Below are positions 9,814 to 15,787 of a stretch of DNA of 64,000 nt, piece by piece. How positions within the stretch are numbered: the first letter of the stretch is position 1; each line of letters starts with the position of its first letter. The notes beneath the pieces are model-generated. The model did no database searches, was not told where the DNA came from, and worked only from the letters and a program-made list of their open reading frames with translations. Made by a program: the position numbers and the translations under genes. Location of the stretch: sequence record LC667451.1; one strand, given 5' to 3'.

Positions 9814-10596
9814 TTAACGCACCTTATTCAGAATGTGGTCGAACTGCACGATGTAGTAACGGTTGTTCGTCACCGCCTCGTCCGAGTACACACTGACTTG
9901 CAGTCGTACCTTGCCCTCGCCGATGTGCTCGTAACGCACGCCGCACTTGTAGTCGTTGTGCATTTCAAGCATGCAGTCCGCGTAGGTACGGAACTTCTGG
10001 AAGAGATCTTCCGTATCTTGACCTGCGTACTGACGCACCTGCTCTTGCAGACACTGCAGGTACAGCGTGCCCTGATCCTTGAACTCCACCGATGAACCGA
10101 GGTTGTCGAAGATCGTGTAGCTGGAGAAGCGCTGTTCGGTCGTGGTGTCCATCGGGAAGCACGGCTCGGCGATGCTGTAGATCTTCGACGAGTTGACTTC
10201 GATGCGATCGACGAACCAGCCAATCGTGTTCTCCGTAGTGTTCGGCGTACGCATCACAGCCTCGAAACTGGCCAGTGGTTCTGCACTGCCGTGCGGCAAC
10301 ACCAACACCTGGAAGCGGAAGCAGTTCGGGTTGACGATCTTCTCTTCGATGATGCCGTACATGAAGAGCGTACGCATCGCGTTGAGACTGCGATCTGCCA
10401 CAATCGCATCGACGAGGTTAGGCCAGTTCGGCCGACCGATCGCCAGGTTATGCACCAGCGTCTGGAGCACCACCGTATCTTCCCAGGTGTACTGCGGACG
10501 ACCGGCCTTGAAGAGCTCCATTAATTCTGCGTAGTTGAAACGACCAGCGTTCTTGAACGTGGTGTACATGTTGTACACATCGCTATTTTGTTCCAT
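9814..10596 (-). CDS. hypothetical protein
   Basis: 260-aa ORF directly downstream of an early-type promoter. Confidence 0.8.
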   Translation of the reverse strand: MEQNSDVYNMYTTFKNAGRFNYAELMELFKAGRPQYTWEDTVVLQTLVHNLAIGRPNWPNLVDAIVADRSLNAMRTLFMYGIIEEKIVNPNCFRFQVLVLPHGSAEPLASFEAVMRTPNTTENTIGWFVDRIEVNSSKIYSIAEPCFPMDTTTEQRFSSYTIFDNLGSSVEFKDQGTLYLQCLQEQVRQYAGQDTEDLFQKFRTYADCMLEMHNDYKCGVRYEHIGEGKVRLQVSVYSDEAVTNNRYYIVQFDHILNKVR

Positions 10597-10638
10597 GCTT
10601 GTCCTCGTTGTAAGTACATTGTTAGTACTGCTCTCCGG

Positions 10639-10668
10639 AGTAATATATATCCCAAACTCCTTTCAATC
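10639..10668 (-). promoter_or_regulatory. phage early-type promoter
   Basis: GGATTGAAAGGAGTTTGGGATATATATTAC matches the repeated motif. Confidence 0.65.
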
Positions 10669-10695
10669 CGGCATAAATCCAGGTTTCGCCTGGCT
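10669..10695 (-). terminator. hairpin with TTATGCC tail
   Basis: CCAGG-CGAAA-CCTGG followed by ATTTATGCC. Confidence 0.55.
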
Positions 10696-10858
10696 GCCCT
10701 TTTTTATTTGTGTTCTTAGAGAAAAAGAGAGGGAAGACCAACCGCTATGGTGGAGAACGATTGCCTTACGGCCTTCCCTCTGGAGGAGACTACAACGCTA
10801 CAACGGAGGACACGACGAACTACACCTACACCAACCTAGAAAGATCTCCCCGACTGGT

Positions 10859-11254
10859 TCAGTCTGATGCTACGCGCCAATCTTCGGCCGCATGGATCAC
10901 CTTGGCGGCACGTTCTTCCAATGGCAAATTCAGCAATCGCTGCTGGGACGCATGCACGCCCTTGATAAAGCCAGGTCCCGAGTACAGTACCACGAACGGT
11001 TTGCCCTCGTGTTTGCCGTCTGCGATCTCTTGCGCCATGGTGGCGCGGGATGCAAACGGCTGGCCTGCTAACAACTCCACGGGCGCCAGTTCGTTGAGTT
11101 CGTCCTGACCAGTAACAAGAAACGCATGCGTGCCTTCCACGACTGCGCTATGACGCGTGAGCACATCAAGTAACTGATCAGGTGTGCGCACAGGCGCGAG
11201 CGTACCGTCCTGAAACACGGTATGCATGAAGATACTCATCGGGTGCTTCATCAT
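10859..11254 (-). CDS. hypothetical protein
   Basis: ORF with GAGGAG SD. Confidence 0.75.
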   Translation of the reverse strand: MMKHPMSIFMHTVFQDGTLAPVRTPDQLLDVLTRHSAVVEGTHAFLVTGQDELNELAPVELLAGQPFASRATMAQEIADGKHEGKPFVVLYSGPGFIKGVHASQQRLLNLPLEERAAKVIHAAEDWRVASD

Positions 11255-11260
11255 CTCTCC

Positions 11261-11593
11261 TCAGCTAAAGAACGACACCGCCAGAATCCGAATGCGATTC
11301 ATCCGCATCGGGGTACCTGCTGCTCCCATGGCCCAGTCTTCGAGGATCTGTGCGTTAGGATGTGCCGTACTATGCTTGAGCAGTCCGCATGCCAGATACT
11401 CGATCGGGGCTAACCCGTTCAGTGCGTTCTTGGTCGACGGTTTGGTCAACGCAGTACGCGTCAGAGCGGGTACACCTGGGACTTGCAGGATCGCTTCCAG
11501 CAAGGCATCTGGCTTACCAATGTAGGCGTTGACTAACGCCGTCATGTCGGTCAGATTCTTGCCAGTGAATAACTGCTGAAACGTGATTGCCAT
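11261..11593 (-). CDS. hypothetical protein
   Basis: ORF with GAGGA SD. Confidence 0.7.
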   Translation of the reverse strand: MAITFQQLFTGKNLTDMTALVNAYIGKPDALLEAILQVPGVPALTRTALTKPSTKNALNGLAPIEYLACGLLKHSTAHPNAQILEDWAMGAAGTPMRMNRIRILAVSFFS

Positions 11594-11652
11594 GTGACTT
11601 CCTCAAAGGGTGGACGAACTACACATCATCCACCCTCGCCGCCCTGCTTGCC

Positions 11653-12669
11653 TTAGTGCTTCGCGTTCGTGCCTTCGACGCCCTTGGCCACACGTTTAGC
11701 GGTGCGCGACTTCAGTGCCGCCAGGGCTGCATCGACGTGTTCCAGTGCTTCCTGGTTTTCCGGGCAGTTGAACGGGCCGTCCTGGAAACCTTCCAGACGA
11801 TGTGAGACCAGTGCGAGCAGCGCCTCGATCGTCACGCCGTTGTTGCCGAATTCCGGAATCGGACCGTTCTGGAACAGGATCGACAGCATCTGAGTCGCGC
11901 CGTCGGCGTCTTCGGCCGCATTGCCTGCCGTGTTGAAGCCAGTGATGTCGTAGCGATGGTTCGCGTTCGTCTTGACGTTCGCTTCGTCGCCGACACGAAT
12001 CACCAGGTTCGATGCCGCGCCTTCGACTTCGTGCTTGCTGATCTGGAAACCGCGGCTGTAGTACGCGACGTCGTTACCCGGACGCTTTTCTTGCGTTGGT
12101 GCGAGCACTTCTTGCTCGTAGGCTTCGATTTCCGCCGGAGTCGCCGGAACGATCAGCGTGTCGCCTTCGCGGTTCCATTCGGATACCGAGATGATCACGA
12201 CGTCGTCCACCGGCACGTCCTGGTGGAAGCCCTTGCTGCCGGTCTTCACGCGACGGATCTGGTCGATCACTTCCTGGCCTTCGATCACCTTGCCAAACAC
12301 AGCGTAGCCCCAACCTTGCGGGGTCGGCGACGAGTGGTTCAGGAAGTCGTTGCGGTTGACGTTGATGAAGAACTGCGCGGTCGCCGAATGCGGATCGTTG
12401 GTCCGCGCCATGGCGATCGTGTACGAGTCGTTCTTCAGGCCGTTCTGCGCTTCGTTCTTGATCGGGGTTTGCGTGTCCTTCTGGATCATGCCCGGCTTAA
12501 AGCCGCCACCTTGCACCATGAAACCGTCGATCACGCGATGGAAGATCGTGCCGTCGTAGTGCTTGCTGTGCACGTAGCTCAGGAAGTTCGCGACAGTGGC
12601 CGGTGCCTTCTCGTCATTGAGTTCGACGAAAAAGAAACCCAGGTTCGTATTGAAACGTACGTATTTCAT
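11653..12669 (-). CDS. ppiB: cyclophilin-type PPIase (PpiB-like) fused to a Tad1-like immune-signal sponge domain
   Basis: N-term [42 protein letters not shown]; C-term [34 protein letters not shown]...R...VEGT. Confidence 0.85.
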
Positions 12670-12687
12670 CTTCTTATTGGTCCTTGT

Positions 12688-13440
12688 TTAAGCAGAATAC
12701 CCGTAGCGTGCGGCGAGGGCGGCAGCAGCCAAGTCCAGATCAGGCGTACGCTTGCTCGAAGGCGAACGATATTCCGGATTCAGCATGTTCATGCGGTCGA
12801 TGTCCAGCGTAAAGCCGAGGACTTCGACGTTGTTCGTGATCTTCTCGATGTCCTCGTGAATCGAGGTCTGGATGCCGTGGTCTTGCAATGACTTGTGGGC
12901 CGGAAAGCGCGTATGTACGCCTTGTACTCGACCGCCGAGCGTAGTGTCGGCCAGTTCAAGATTAATCGTGCTACGCAGATCGAGCGTGATCTGGATCTTC
13001 AGGCCAGCGCTCAAGAACGGATCGAGCAGACGGAACGGTACACCCTGGTGGTCACGTGTGCTTGCATCAAGCTCCGCCAGGAACGCATAATCGAGCATCA
13101 TCACGCGATAACCCGAGTGCGAACCACGTGTAAAGGGCAGTTCAACGCGTTGTTGCAGGATCTGGTCGCCGATACGAATGTACACGTATTCCAGTGTGGC
13201 CTTGGTCGAGAGATGGTCGGTCGGGTTATGCAGCTTCGCGTCGACTGTCTGCTCGTTCTGGCTGATACCCAGCAACGAGAACGTCACCCCATTCTTCACA
13301 GGCGCAGTGTCGAAGTTCACTCCGTCGACTTGCACCTCGTGTCCCAATTCCGTGACCAAATACTGGTCACGCCCCTCTGACCAAATCGGCCAGGCCCGGA
13401 CCGATCGATGTAGCCGGTCTTCTACGATAAACGATTGCAT
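12688..13440 (-). CDS. hypothetical protein
   Basis: 250-aa ORF, AAGGAA SD. Confidence 0.8.
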   Translation of the reverse strand: MQSFIVEDRLHRSVRAWPIWSEGRDQYLVTELGHEVQVDGVNFDTAPVKNGVTFSLLGISQNEQTVDAKLHNPTDHLSTKATLEYVYIRIGDQILQQRVELPFTRGSHSGYRVMMLDYAFLAELDASTRDHQGVPFRLLDPFLSAGLKIQITLDLRSTINLELADTTLGGRVQGVHTRFPAHKSLQDHGIQTSIHEDIEKITNNVEVLGFTLDIDRMNMLNPEYRSPSSKRTPDLDLAAAALAARYGYSA

Positions 13441-13469
13441 TCCACTTTCCTTCGTTTTTTGGTTTTAGT

Positions 13470-13945
13470 GACGCACTCCACAGATTGCTCTTCGACACTC
13501 ACCCGTCTTACCGTCCTCCTTTCGGTTAGAGCGGTAGTCCTCAACAGGTTCGTCGACACGCGAGGTCGTGTCGTTTGGACCAAAGAACTTTCTGCAGGCT
13601 GCGCCCTTTACTTTGTCAACGGCTTCTTGGCTGTTTTGCGAGGACAGCGTCTGCCGCTATGTTCGTTTCAAGGTACAACTTGCTGTGACTCCGGTAGCAC
13701 CGTAAGTCGTTGCCGTACGATTTTGAGCGCAGGGACCTTGGCGGGTAGCGCGCTCATGCGGGTGTGCCCGAACCGGGCAACGCTCGCCTTGCGTAGGATC
13801 GTGAACCTAGTGCTCTGAGGGGGACGTGAGAAATCCCCCTTTCGCGGGCTTTACCCCACGAATTACCAATCGCCACTTGAGAAGGGTGTACTAAACAGGA
13901 TGACGATTGATAACCGGTCGCCGACTTGCACGGCTCATCAGAGAG
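13470..13945 (-). ncRNA. candidate ~480-nt structured intergenic RNA
   Basis: no minus-strand ORF of 60 aa or more; more than 10 hairpins, several GNRA loops, G-U pairs favour the minus strand. Confidence 0.45.
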
Positions 13946-13947
13946 CT

Positions 13948-14223
13948 TTACAGACTGCGCAGCCAGGGTTCATGGTCGCGAATCCGTTGAACCACGTCCT
14001 TATGGCCGCGGCGCTTAATCGTGTCACGAATGACTTGCGTAGCTTCGAAGGTTTCGTGCATCTTCTCTTCGATCACTTCAGCCACCTGGCCGATGCACTT
14101 CGGGTCCGATTCCAGATGACCCTTCAGTTGGTGCGCTTCGCTAATGAGTGCATTCTGGGCAATGACCAGCGCTTCCGTGAGGGCGCGAGACAGCGGTTGA
14201 AATCTGAAGTTATTGTCGTTCAC
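13948..14223 (-). CDS. hypothetical helical protein
   Basis: GTG start with AAGGA SD. Confidence 0.7.
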   Translation of the reverse strand: MNDNNFRFQPLSRALTEALVIAQNALISEAHQLKGHLESDPKCIGQVAEVIEEKMHETFEATQVIRDTIKRRGHKDVVQRIRDHEPWLRSL

Positions 14224-14286
14224 GGTATTCCTTGTTATTCGTTTGGCATGTTCCTTCTAAATCATGACCCCACTCAGTAAGTTTTC

Positions 14287-14835
14287 CTATCCGGCTGATT
14301 TTACGACCAGCTGATGCGAACCCTCGATTACCTGGGCTCGGATCTCTTCGGCCGTATGATCGCGATCAATCCCATCCTCGTCACGCTGACGAAAACCACC
14401 CGGTAGCGTCGCTTCAGCAGGAATGCCCAGTCGATACGCCGCAATGATACCTGCAATGTCCGCGCCTGTCTGTCCACCTGAGATAATCTTCTCTAAGGGC
14501 CAGGCGTGATGGACAAGCGCCAGGATATCGTAGACGTATTGGTTCACTTGTGCGCGCGTGATACCTGCCTTGGCATAGGTCGCAATCCCATTGCCTGCCA
14601 CGTTGAGTACCTTGACACTGCGCTTACGACACTCGATGAAGAGTCGCCGTGCATTCTCAATCATCGGTTCGTGAAAAGGTAGAGCGATAAACTTCTCCCC
14701 AGCGGCTTTGTGCGTGAGCTTCTCACCACCCGTGTAGTAGTTCACCGCCACAGCAATGGTCAGGTCAGAGGTCGAAGCATTGTGAAACGTACGTGGAACA
14801 TAGCTCTTGCTCTGGTGTTCGAGGATAGTCAGCAT
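14287..14835 (-). CDS. SLOG-superfamily (YpsA/MoCo-carrier-like) nucleotide-binding protein
   Basis: RT..N..SD.T, LNVAGN and IISGGQTGAD.AG motifs. Confidence 0.8.
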   Translation of the reverse strand: MLTILEHQSKSYVPRTFHNASTSDLTIAVAVNYYTGGEKLTHKAAGEKFIALPFHEPMIENARRLFIECRKRSVKVLNVAGNGIATYAKAGITRAQVNQYVYDILALVHHAWPLEKIISGGQTGADIAGIIAAYRLGIPAEATLPGGFRQRDEDGIDRDHTAEEIRAQVIEGSHQLVVKSAG

Positions 14836-14879
14836 GGTGTTCTCCTATATCTACACCATAGCGCGTTACAGTAAAAACG

Positions 14880-14909
14880 GCATAAGAGCGGACCCGAAGG
14901 CCCGCTCTC
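14880..14909 (-). terminator. hairpin (TTCG loop) with TTATGCC tail
   Basis: AGAGCGG/CCGCTCT stem. Confidence 0.75.
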
Positions 14910-14929
14910 ACTGAGACGCACTAAGACGC

Positions 14930-15289
14930 TTAAGCGCCTGCGTTCGATTCGCCTTCGCTCGAGCTCGGCGTGCCGTTGGGCAGATGCGACGTACCGTCGA
15001 CCGGCACCGCGTAGCCCGTGGCCGTCACGAACGGACCCGTTGCCGGGGGCGCTTCACCCGTGTCGACGAACGGCACGTTGGTCATGGAGAACGCGCCTTG
15101 CGGGGTCTGCTTGGTTTGCGCGGGATTCTCGACCGCAACGTTCACGCGGCTGCCGCCGGTCAGGACCTTGACGATCGTACAGGGCAGCGGAGCGATGGTC
15201 GTGGTGGTTGCACCGGTGCCATCGACACCCAGGGCGGGAAGGTTGTGTTGCGGGTAGTACTTGGCTGCGGTATTGACTACGGCGGGCAT
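14930..15289 (-). CDS. hypothetical Pro/Thr-rich protein (paralog of 15323..15787)
   Basis: shared YP..PL...V.V....NVP....GY pattern. Confidence 0.7.
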   Translation of the reverse strand: MPAVVNTAAKYYPQHNLPALGVDGTGATTTTIAPLPCTIVKVLTGGSRVNVAVENPAQTKQTPQGAFSMTNVPFVDTGEAPPATGPFVTATGYAVPVDGTSHLPNGTPSSSEGESNAGA

Positions 15290-15322
15290 GGATTACTCCG
15301 TGGTGTGAAAAAGTGAAGAAGC

Positions 15323-15787
15323 TTATTCCGGATCGCTGGCGACCGGGGTTTCCGTCGCCGTGGTCGGCGTACCGGTTTCGTTCGCCATGATCTTGACAGG
15401 CACGTACGGCTGAGCACTATCGTCCGGATTGGCAGGCGGATGCGTCGGCGAGAGCGGCATGTTCCAGCCAGCCGGTTGATACGGCACGGTCTTCGCAGGC
15501 GGGAACGCGGGTGCATCGTTCGGGTCCACACAGTAGCCGCCATCACCAGGGATGAGGTTCGTGTACGGACGCGTGGCGAATTCGCTGTCGAAGTACGGCA
15601 CATTCTTGATCGTGTACGGACGACCACCGGCCGCAGGCGTCACGTAGAGCGTGAGCTTGAGAGTCGGTCCCACAGTGACCACACGGGCGCTAAGCGGCGT
15701 GATCGCTTGGATTGCGTTCAGATCCGCCAGCTGTCCACCCCGTTTGGGATAGAAGTTTACGGTCTGACCGACGGTTGGAGCTGCCAT
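15323..15787 (-). CDS. hypothetical Pro/Thr-rich protein (PTVG..V.FY family)
   Basis: GGGGA SD; motif shared with its neighbour. Confidence 0.75.
   Translation of the reverse strand: MAAPTVGQTVNFYPKRGGQLADLNAIQAITPLSARVVTVGPTLKLTLYVTPAAGGRPYTIKNVPYFDSEFATRPYTNLIPGDGGYCVDPNDAPAFPPAKTVPYQPAGWNMPLSPTHPPANPDDSAQPYVPVKIMANETGTPTTATETPVASDPE

Follow-up and report, generated by a model that had tools for sequence, protein, structure and literature searches.

A conserved cyclophilin-Tad1 protein, predicted to form a dimeric sponge, is encoded in one unit with a capsid-domain paralogue in Burkholderia phage FLC9

The gp131 locus and its two-domain product

This study deals with gp131 of the jumbo phage FLC9, a phage of Burkholderia glumae that has been investigated for the biological control of rice seedling rot. 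The gene lies on a stretch of 64,000 nucleotides (nt), here called the window, of the 321,833-bp genome record LC667451.1, in which the record position is the window position plus 124,000. Its setting is a long series of small genes, all on one strand. The initial annotation of this DNA, made from the sequence alone, had described a single open reading frame (ORF) of 338 amino acids (aa) at this place, and the ORF is indeed intact, with an ATG start and no internal stop codon. It equals the annotated coding sequence of FLC9_gp131, which the record labels as 'hypothetical protein' only. We find that gp131 is a genuine conserved protein that consists of a PpiB-type cyclophilin, an acidic linker of about 45 residues and a complete Tad1 domain, and that its gene forms a conserved unit with the gene of gp132, which is paralogous to the insertion (I) domain of the major capsid protein (MCP). 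The features of the locus are collected in Table 1. FLC9 is grouped with the Chimalliviridae in a genome-distance tree, and we regard it as a phiKZ-type phage because it has a phiKZ-type MCP, gp92 (phrog_3231, 1e-193; phiKZ gp120, 1.6e-79), a homologue of the phiKZ head protease gp175 (35% identity, 9e-43) and, as homologues of phiKZ gp178 and gp180, the virion RNA polymerase subunits. The homologues of phiKZ gp175, gp176, gp178, gp180 and gp182 follow one another in FLC9 as they do in phiKZ.

Table 1. Positions of the features discussed (window positions unless another sequence is named; PPIase, peptidyl-prolyl isomerase; AF2, AlphaFold2)
Feature	Position	Strand	Basis or remark
gp131, cyclophilin-Tad1 fusion ORF, stop codon included	11653..12669	-	same as annotated coding sequence BDD79650.1
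Cyclophilin-type PPIase domain, aa 3-162	12184..12663	-	PF00160 and PDB 3s6m
Acidic linker of variable length, aa 163-208	12046..12183	-	fusion alignment
Complete Tad1-family domain, phiKZ gp184 subfamily, aa 209-337	11659..12045	-	PDB sequence and fold matches
gp132, stand-alone MCP I-domain paralogue, 250 aa	12688..13440	-	PF25620, tblastn and AF2
Conserved structured RNA-like element between gp133 and gp132, 507 nt	13441..13947	-	covariation
Copy of the RNA element	L002 8733-9227
Copy of the RNA element	L018 270-764
Copy of the RNA element	L019 3688-4188
Copy of the RNA element	L011 7467-8000
Copy of the RNA element	L023 4801-5305
Copy of the RNA element	L024 2538-3042
Copy of the RNA element	L025 7368-7872
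gp130, 110 aa	11261-11593	-	63-78% identity in related contigs
gp133, 91 aa	13948-14223	-	47-54% identity in related contigs
gp134, 182 aa	14287-14835	-	circularly permuted YpsA SLOG domain, PF12694 9.7e-13
Terminator-like hairpin, 13 pairs then T-run	14882-14911	-	just upstream of gp134
gp87, second MCP I-domain paralogue	record 92262-93407 = L021 263-1408	-	aa 2-218 PhiKZ_MCP 6.7e-16

The N-terminal half of gp131 had been taken at the outset for a host-like PpiB of the Burkholderia type, and the family and structure matches agree with this description. The Pfam model PF00160 recognizes the cyclophilin domain with E = 2.5e-44 and 151.8 bits, against a cut-off of 21.7 bits, and is covered from profile position 1 to 157 of 159, while the closest solved match is PpiB of B. 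pseudomallei (E = 1.2e-80), with which 118 of 156 aligned residues, about 76%, are identical. The score against the NCBIfam PpiB equivalog NF008057 is 235.3 bits, under the curated cut-off of 297 bits, and we therefore call the domain PpiB-like and not a housekeeping PpiB equivalog. The spacing of Phe-Met-x-Gln and Gln-Phe-Phe around the catalytic Arg is that of cyclophilins, the motif is intact, and R45, F50, M51, Q53, Q99, F100 and F101 are invariant in all ten phage cyclophilin modules that we collected. By this spacing, the motif residues would correspond to the catalytic set Arg55, Phe60, Met61, Gln63 and Phe113 of human CypA (PMC13162259). The domain had also been considered a captured host foldase, which holds as far as its PpiB-like and Burkholderia-like character is concerned but not in the sense of a one-off recent capture, since the phage modules of the clade share 66-82% identity with one another and the GC content of the gp131 cyclophilin (0.57, against 0.55 for the window) is phage-like. 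On both grounds the cyclophilin looks like an old acquisition of the phage lineage that has been well kept in this clade of jumbo phages. When cellular genomes were scanned for fused proteins of this kind, five distant cyclophilins were returned, none of them fused, with peptide patterns so specific that the result has little bearing on distribution or donor. A representative search with the full gp131 gave 28,057 matches, the top of which is dominated by tandem multi-cyclophilin proteins and is useless for counting fusions.

The strict conservation of the catalytic motif in 10 of 10 phage modules could be taken to mean that the cyclophilin itself is the effector, with a target in the host or the phage, and that Tad1 is a handle which senses nucleotides or dimerises and in this way places or regulates the PPIase. 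Such a role would also fit the retention of the cyclophilin in every form of the unit, be it as a fusion with Tad1, as a fusion with the I domain or as a gene of its own next to the others. Against it, there is no known target; most Tad1 proteins, phiKZ gp184 included, have no cyclophilin; and the identity to the B. pseudomallei protein is about that found among the phage copies, which gives no sign of a new specificity. We consider an effector role of this kind highly improbable.

The reading of the C-terminal half as Tad1 is backed both by sequence matches in the PDB and by the predicted fold. It matches phrog_2428 with 6e-29, and a phmmer search of gp131 against PDB sequences retrieves phiKZ gp184 at 1.1e-20, CmTad1 at 2.6e-14 and CbTad1 at about 1e-9 (about 1.4e-9), the solved Tad1 proteins ranging from 2.6e-14 to 1.9e-9. 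Hundreds of stand-alone proteins of 130-136 aa match the last 143 residues of gp131 at 90% coverage and about 50% identity, and because these proteins span it, the C-terminus is a Tad1 module in full, and about 45 aa remain for the linker. The division into two domains and a linker thus stands as originally proposed, with different borders: Tad1 begins near residues 204-209 and not at 228, and the linker is about 40-46 and not about 60 aa long. In four fusions the linker has 37-46 aa, among them 8-10 Asp plus Glu, and hardly any conserved columns. The AF2 model of the Tad1 domain, built from 72 sequences with a predicted local distance difference test score (pLDDT) of 86, has strands at 28-31, 42-48 and 67-72 followed by helices at 86-102 and 108-134, that is, the Tad1 fold with an N-terminal antiparallel beta-sheet and two long C-terminal helices. 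When this model was compared with the PDB by Foldseek, as had been proposed for the Tad1 assignment, the best 20 matches were all Tad1, with probability 1.00 and template modelling (TM) scores of 0.73-0.78, and the next had E > 0.5. A search of a viral library with the Tad1 domain gave Acb2/Tad1-type proteins only, among them a Tad1-like protein of the jumbo phage Eowyn that is annotated as structural. The FLC9 domain is 58-81% identical to fused forms, against 50-57% to stand-alone forms.

Among deposited phages the fusion is found in FLC9 only. Fused cyclophilin-Tad1 ORFs are present, however, in at least nine other diverged metagenomic jumbo-phage sequences (P0002, P0003, P0004, P0009, P0013, L018, L024, L025 and P0014), of which P0002 is a contig of 326.6 kb, P0004 ends at a contig edge, and L024 and L025 are IMG/VR contigs of 310-315 kb. 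They come from independent samples, have no stops, and are 51-81% identical in the Tad1 part. A related contig, L009, in which the cyclophilin is a gene of its own, might suggest that two adjacent genes were merged in FLC9 through a stop codon lost in sequencing or assembly, a caution already expressed in the initial annotation. Since stop-free fused ORFs recur in so many independent contigs, this artefact is ruled out, and the chance that we attach to it is negligible. The fusion of P0009 (350 aa) has a longer C-terminal tail, unlike all others, which fits either one frameshift in the gene or one error in the assembly.

Ligand contacts of the Tad1 domain and predicted sponge action

In CbTad1, glyco-cyclic ADP-ribose (gcADPR) and cyclic dinucleotides are contacted by F82, N92, R109 and R113; the clamp for cyclic trinucleotides is formed by CbTad1 R90 and T97, equivalent to CmTad1 R88 and T95; and the interface of the hexamer, a trimer of dimers, includes CmTad1 Q98, E99, M102, W103 and K106 (bioRxiv 10.1101/2023.11.15.567273). 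These residues were transferred to gp131 through HMMER alignments with the PDB Tad1 sequences. The pocket set becomes F295, N305, R322 and R326, which are the same in all 72 aligned relatives and are also kept in nearly all multi-domain relatives, P0009 with its divergent tail being left out of the residue counts at the last two pocket positions. The clamp positions, by contrast, hold Pro303 and Glu310 and not Arg and Thr, and the interface positions hold Asp, Ala, Ala, Ala and Ser. Stand-alone-size relatives (n = 71) keep the Arg in 28, the Thr in 39 and the Trp in 41 cases. The Arg/Thr/Trp set occurs in none of 19 cyclophilin- or I-domain-fused relatives, and it is also gone in phiKZ gp184. 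The Trp that had been noticed as missing from the Tad1 helix is thus accounted for, CmTad1 W103 being aligned with Ala318, and by these alignments its absence is part of a coordinated loss of hexamer and trinucleotide features. Because gp131 has neither the phosphate clamp of Arg and Thr nor the hexamer contacts of Met and Trp, it probably forms no canonical Tad1 hexamer and probably does not bind cyclic trinucleotides. The early suggestion that its ligand specificity may differ would therefore hold for trinucleotides, whose binding is predicted to be lost, but not for the Thoeris signal, the pocket for which is intact.

We propose that the Tad1 domains of gp131 would pair, and that the pocket at the dimer interface would trap the gcADPR of Thoeris and the cyclic dinucleotides of the cyclic-oligonucleotide-based antiphage signalling system (CBASS), so that the host effectors would be starved of activation. 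Sponge action of this kind, with binding of gcADPR and cyclic dinucleotides by a dimer that has no trinucleotide site, we hold to be probable because the ligand contacts are invariant and because there is a precedent in phiKZ. There, the complex at the inner side of the capsid vertex contains gp184 as a minor protein that is cut by the head protease gp175. Later papers describe gp184 as a non-essential Tad1 whose N-terminus is wedged in the capsid and whose C-terminal part is released and injected, and for its anti-Thoeris and anti-CBASS activity they cite Li et al. 2024. In two metagenomic proteins of 224-225 aa, P0043 and P0053, an HTH_3 DNA-binding domain precedes a Tad1-like domain with an intact F/N/R/R pocket; judged by this layout, they could be regulators that respond to a nucleotide signal instead of sponges.

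The precedent can also be turned the other way, as the best PDB sequence match of the Tad1 part comes from the solved phiKZ capsid. Together with the association with an MCP-derived module and with the missing residues for hexamer and trinucleotides, this would suit a protein that is a structural accessory only, in which the Tad1 fold is a minor capsid or scaffolding piece without nucleotide binding and the cyclophilin a packaged folding aid. The invariance of the four ligand contacts in stand-alone and fused forms alike is hard to explain without ligand binding. Moreover, phiKZ can do without gp184, which later papers cite as an active Tad1, and the Tad1 part of gp184 is not the portion that was resolved in the capsid. 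A purely structural role is accordingly very unlikely.

gp132, the three-module unit and its surroundings

The gene of gp132 lies directly upstream of that of gp131, separated from it by a gap of 18 nt, and has its own Shine-Dalgarno-like AAGGA. Its product matches the PhiKZ_MCP family PF25620 (2.3e-14) at profile positions 170-364. In the phiKZ MCP, gp120, the I domain comprises residues 248-472 and lies on the outer capsid surface, and the module of P0005, to which gp132 is homologous (8e-13), was aligned to residues 262-332 of gp120. The I-domain region of the FLC9 MCP finds gp132 by tblastn at 3.8e-12, the module of P0014 at 7e-25 and that of P0008 at 4e-24. The AF2 model of gp132 has a confident core at residues 75-218 which matches MCPs of jumbo phages only, with probability 1.00. 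These results establish gp132 as a paralogue of the MCP I domain. In P0005-P0012, P0015-P0018 and P0020, modules of this type precede Tad1 on the same polypeptide, and gp132 is likewise homologous to the module fused to Tad1 in P0014 (3e-14).

Four arrangements of the parts are found. An I-domain gene is followed by a cyclophilin-Tad1 gene in FLC9, L002, L018, L019/L020, L024 and L025; a cyclophilin gene is followed by an I-domain-Tad1 gene in L009; a single cyclophilin-I-domain-Tad1 chain of 533 aa is encoded in L011 (P0014); and in phiKZ gp184 Tad1 stands behind an unrelated N-terminus. Parts that are joined in one genome and encoded separately in another, as cyclophilin, I-domain module and Tad1 are here, are a classic indication of joint action, and the three are probably a working unit. 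A second I-domain paralogue of FLC9, gp87, is encoded five genes away from the MCP gene and has, behind its I-domain module, a different C-terminal part of 156 aa that gave no match in Pfam, PHROG or PDB. This other C-terminal part, near the MCP gene, suggests that I-domain modules may carry different cargo domains.

How gp132 would contribute to sponge action is a weaker part of our proposal. The I-domain module might tie the sponge to the capsid, in the way in which phiKZ lodges gp184 and injects its Tad1 part, and the cyclophilin might help to fold or assemble such capsid-tied cargo. The idea of tethering comes from the layout of phiKZ gp184 and gp93, with an N-terminal capsid piece and a C-terminal cargo, and from the position of gp87 near the MCP gene, and we put forward capsid tethering by gp132 as a tentative and somewhat doubtful step. 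As to the cyclophilin, folding help, capsid binding and other roles are all possible.

Several observations weigh against our interpretation. The I domain is outside the shell in phiKZ, which is a poor fit with delivery from the interior of the head; the FLC9 I-domain module and Tad1 are separate polypeptides; gp131 and gp132 lie among small accessory genes, distant from the structural genes; the capsid-lodged N-terminal segment of gp184 has no counterpart in gp131 by sequence; and the gp132 model has no fold match to the resolved part of gp184 (8y6v_I). With regard to the Tad1 assignment, the Pfam model Acb2_Tad1_hairpin was not reported for gp131 in our own scan, though it is in the precomputed table.

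Some of these points would favour a cytoplasmic pair of anti-defence proteins, in which gp131 is a free sponge and gp132 a decoy of the exposed I domain that occupies host sensors recognising the capsid, so that the unit would both dampen activation and soak up the signal. The surface exposure of the I domain in the phiKZ MCP, the location of both genes in the accessory region and outside the structural module, the separation of I-domain module and Tad1 in FLC9, and the reported non-essential nature of the phiKZ gene are all in line with such a pair. This analysis gave no evidence for a host sensor of the I domain, however, and the layout of the relatives, with module and Tad1 in one chain, is that of phiKZ gp184 and gp93, namely a capsid N-terminus followed by a released cargo. 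In addition, gp87 combines an I-domain module with another C-terminal part just five genes from gp92, and the Tad1-like protein of Eowyn is annotated as structural. A cytoplasmic decoy and sponge therefore seem quite unlikely to us.

If tethering is carried further, cyclophilin, I-domain paralogue and Tad1 might constitute a capsid-borne counter-defence cargo system of a new kind, possibly together with an RNA of about 500 nt that is encoded upstream. The duplicated I-domain modules would then be general adaptors by which variable cargo is attached to the capsid lattice and brought to the next host, with Tad1 as the cargo of gp132 and gp131 and another domain as that of gp87, and refolding or assembly of the cargo would fall to a prolyl isomerase dedicated to it. 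We regard so general a system as unlikely.

The RNA in question is the element between gp133 and gp132. Its eight copies, including that of FLC9, are 80-92% identical in blocks at the nucleotide level, and in three IMG/VR contigs its DNA is 80-82% identical, the adjoining gp132 protein only 32-39%. RNAalifold predicts 134 pairs for the eight copies, 52-54 of them with compensatory double changes, and the consensus energy of -139.7 kcal/mol compares with -49.7 +/- 5.0 kcal/mol in 100 column shuffles (z = -18) and with -91.4 kcal/mol for the reverse strand, so that the gene strand folds much better. No ORF in it is kept across the relatives, and a search of Rfam gave no match at E <= 1. The element is absent from L009, and no other phage deposited in GenBank has one. 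A hammerhead reading of its start, CUGAUGAG, was ruled out, since the element has no other part of the hammerhead core and no Rfam match. Its covariation and conservation make it a strong candidate, either for a large structured RNA that has not been described or for a long structured leader of the gp132/gp131 unit.

Other neighbours also deserve mention. The protein gp134, encoded two genes upstream of the Tad1 unit, belongs to phrog_10774 (2e-50), has a weak PDB match to a 'molybdenum carrier' and is 75% identical to its copy in L011. SLOG domains bind nucleotide-derived ligands, and from its domain assignment gp134 could be a putative second signal-binding protein. The genes of gp130 and gp133, which have no family or structure match, border the gp131/gp132 unit in every related contig and may be members of the module. 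A strong terminator-like hairpin just upstream of gp134 suggests that the transcript from gp135 may end there, and the hairpin may thus mark the start of a transcription unit of gp134, gp133, the RNA element, gp132 and gp131. A promoter and terminator scan of positions 10500-15500 gave counts under the shuffle expectation and no terminator in the gap between gp132 and gp131. PADLOC found no match to defence-system families among gp130-gp134.

Implications and comparison with known systems

Taken together, the best explanation of these results, and one that we consider fairly likely, is that gp131 is a conserved two-domain cyclophilin-Tad1 protein, predicted to act as a dimeric sponge, which forms a unit with gp132. 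The literature on phiKZ gp184 describes Tad1 as so far the only anti-defence protein of jumbo phages. The occurrence of Tad1 in these phages is thus already known, and what is new is its joining with a cyclophilin and with an MCP-derived module, for neither of which we found a paper that links it to Tad1. In the phiKZ-type clade, Tad1 is no small free protein but one of three parts that recur together, the others being a prolyl isomerase and a copy of a segment of the capsid protein. From this we would predict a Tad1 subfamily that keeps the pocket for Thoeris signals and cyclic dinucleotides but no longer has the trinucleotide site or forms the hexamer, a counter-defence cargo that is physically linked to the capsid through I-domain paralogues, and a virus-encoded foldase that plays a role in this link. 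In practical terms, a protein labelled 'hypothetical' becomes, by its sequence features, an anti-defence candidate in a biocontrol phage.

Each part of the unit can be compared with a known relative. With bacterial PpiB (3s6m; E. coli PpiB, 2nul) the cyclophilin half shares the full-length single-domain cyclophilin fold, the catalytic Arg and Phe-Met-x-Gln. In contrast to bacterial PpiB, it is phage-encoded, has a phage-like GC content, scores under the equivalog cut-off and is joined to a second domain. The fold, the four pocket residues and the module size of about 130 aa are common to the Tad1 half, CbTad1 (7uav, 7uaw and 8smd) and CmTad1 (8kbb-8kbd). The latter two are free hexamers of 122-132 aa with two cyclic-trinucleotide sites, whereas the Tad1 of gp131 is fused, has Pro/Glu in place of the Arg/Thr clamp and has Ala/Ala in place of the Met/Trp interface. 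The anti-CBASS sponge Acb2 shares with gp131 the Pfam Acb2/Tad1 hairpin domain and the logic of a sponge, but it differs in assembly and in binding residues (bioRxiv 10.1101/2023.11.15.567273), and no Acb2 structure is among the PDB sequence or fold matches of the gp131 Tad1 domain. The I domain of jumbo-phage MCPs is matched by gp132 and by the N-terminal modules of the P0005 type in Pfam, in BLAST against the MCP of FLC9 and in fold. Unlike the I domain of the MCP, these modules are either a free protein of 250 aa or the N-terminus of a cargo protein, and they come without the HK97-type A and P domains.

The closest characterised relative is phiKZ gp184 (PDB 8y6v, chain I), the best solved match of the Tad1 half, with 45% identity over about 103 aa. 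The two phages are jumbo phages of one type with respect to capsid, protease and virion RNA polymerase. Both proteins have Tad1 at the C-terminus of a longer chain, with a pocket of Y/N/R/R in gp184 and F/N/R/R in gp131, and both lack the Arg/Thr/Trp residues for trinucleotides and for the hexamer. Residues 125-226 of gp184, its Tad1 part, alone match gp131 and are the only part of gp184 with a counterpart in FLC9. A gp184-like N-terminal anchor in gp131 or gp132 is ruled out, since there is no likeness in sequence (E = 0.18 for the N-terminus of gp184 against gp132) and none in fold for the gp132 model. Where gp184, a protein of 230 aa, has its capsid-lodged N-terminal segment, gp131 has the cyclophilin. 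The gp131 gene also lies elsewhere in the genome, and it is paired with a gene for an MCP I-domain paralogue, a partner that phiKZ gp184 does not have.

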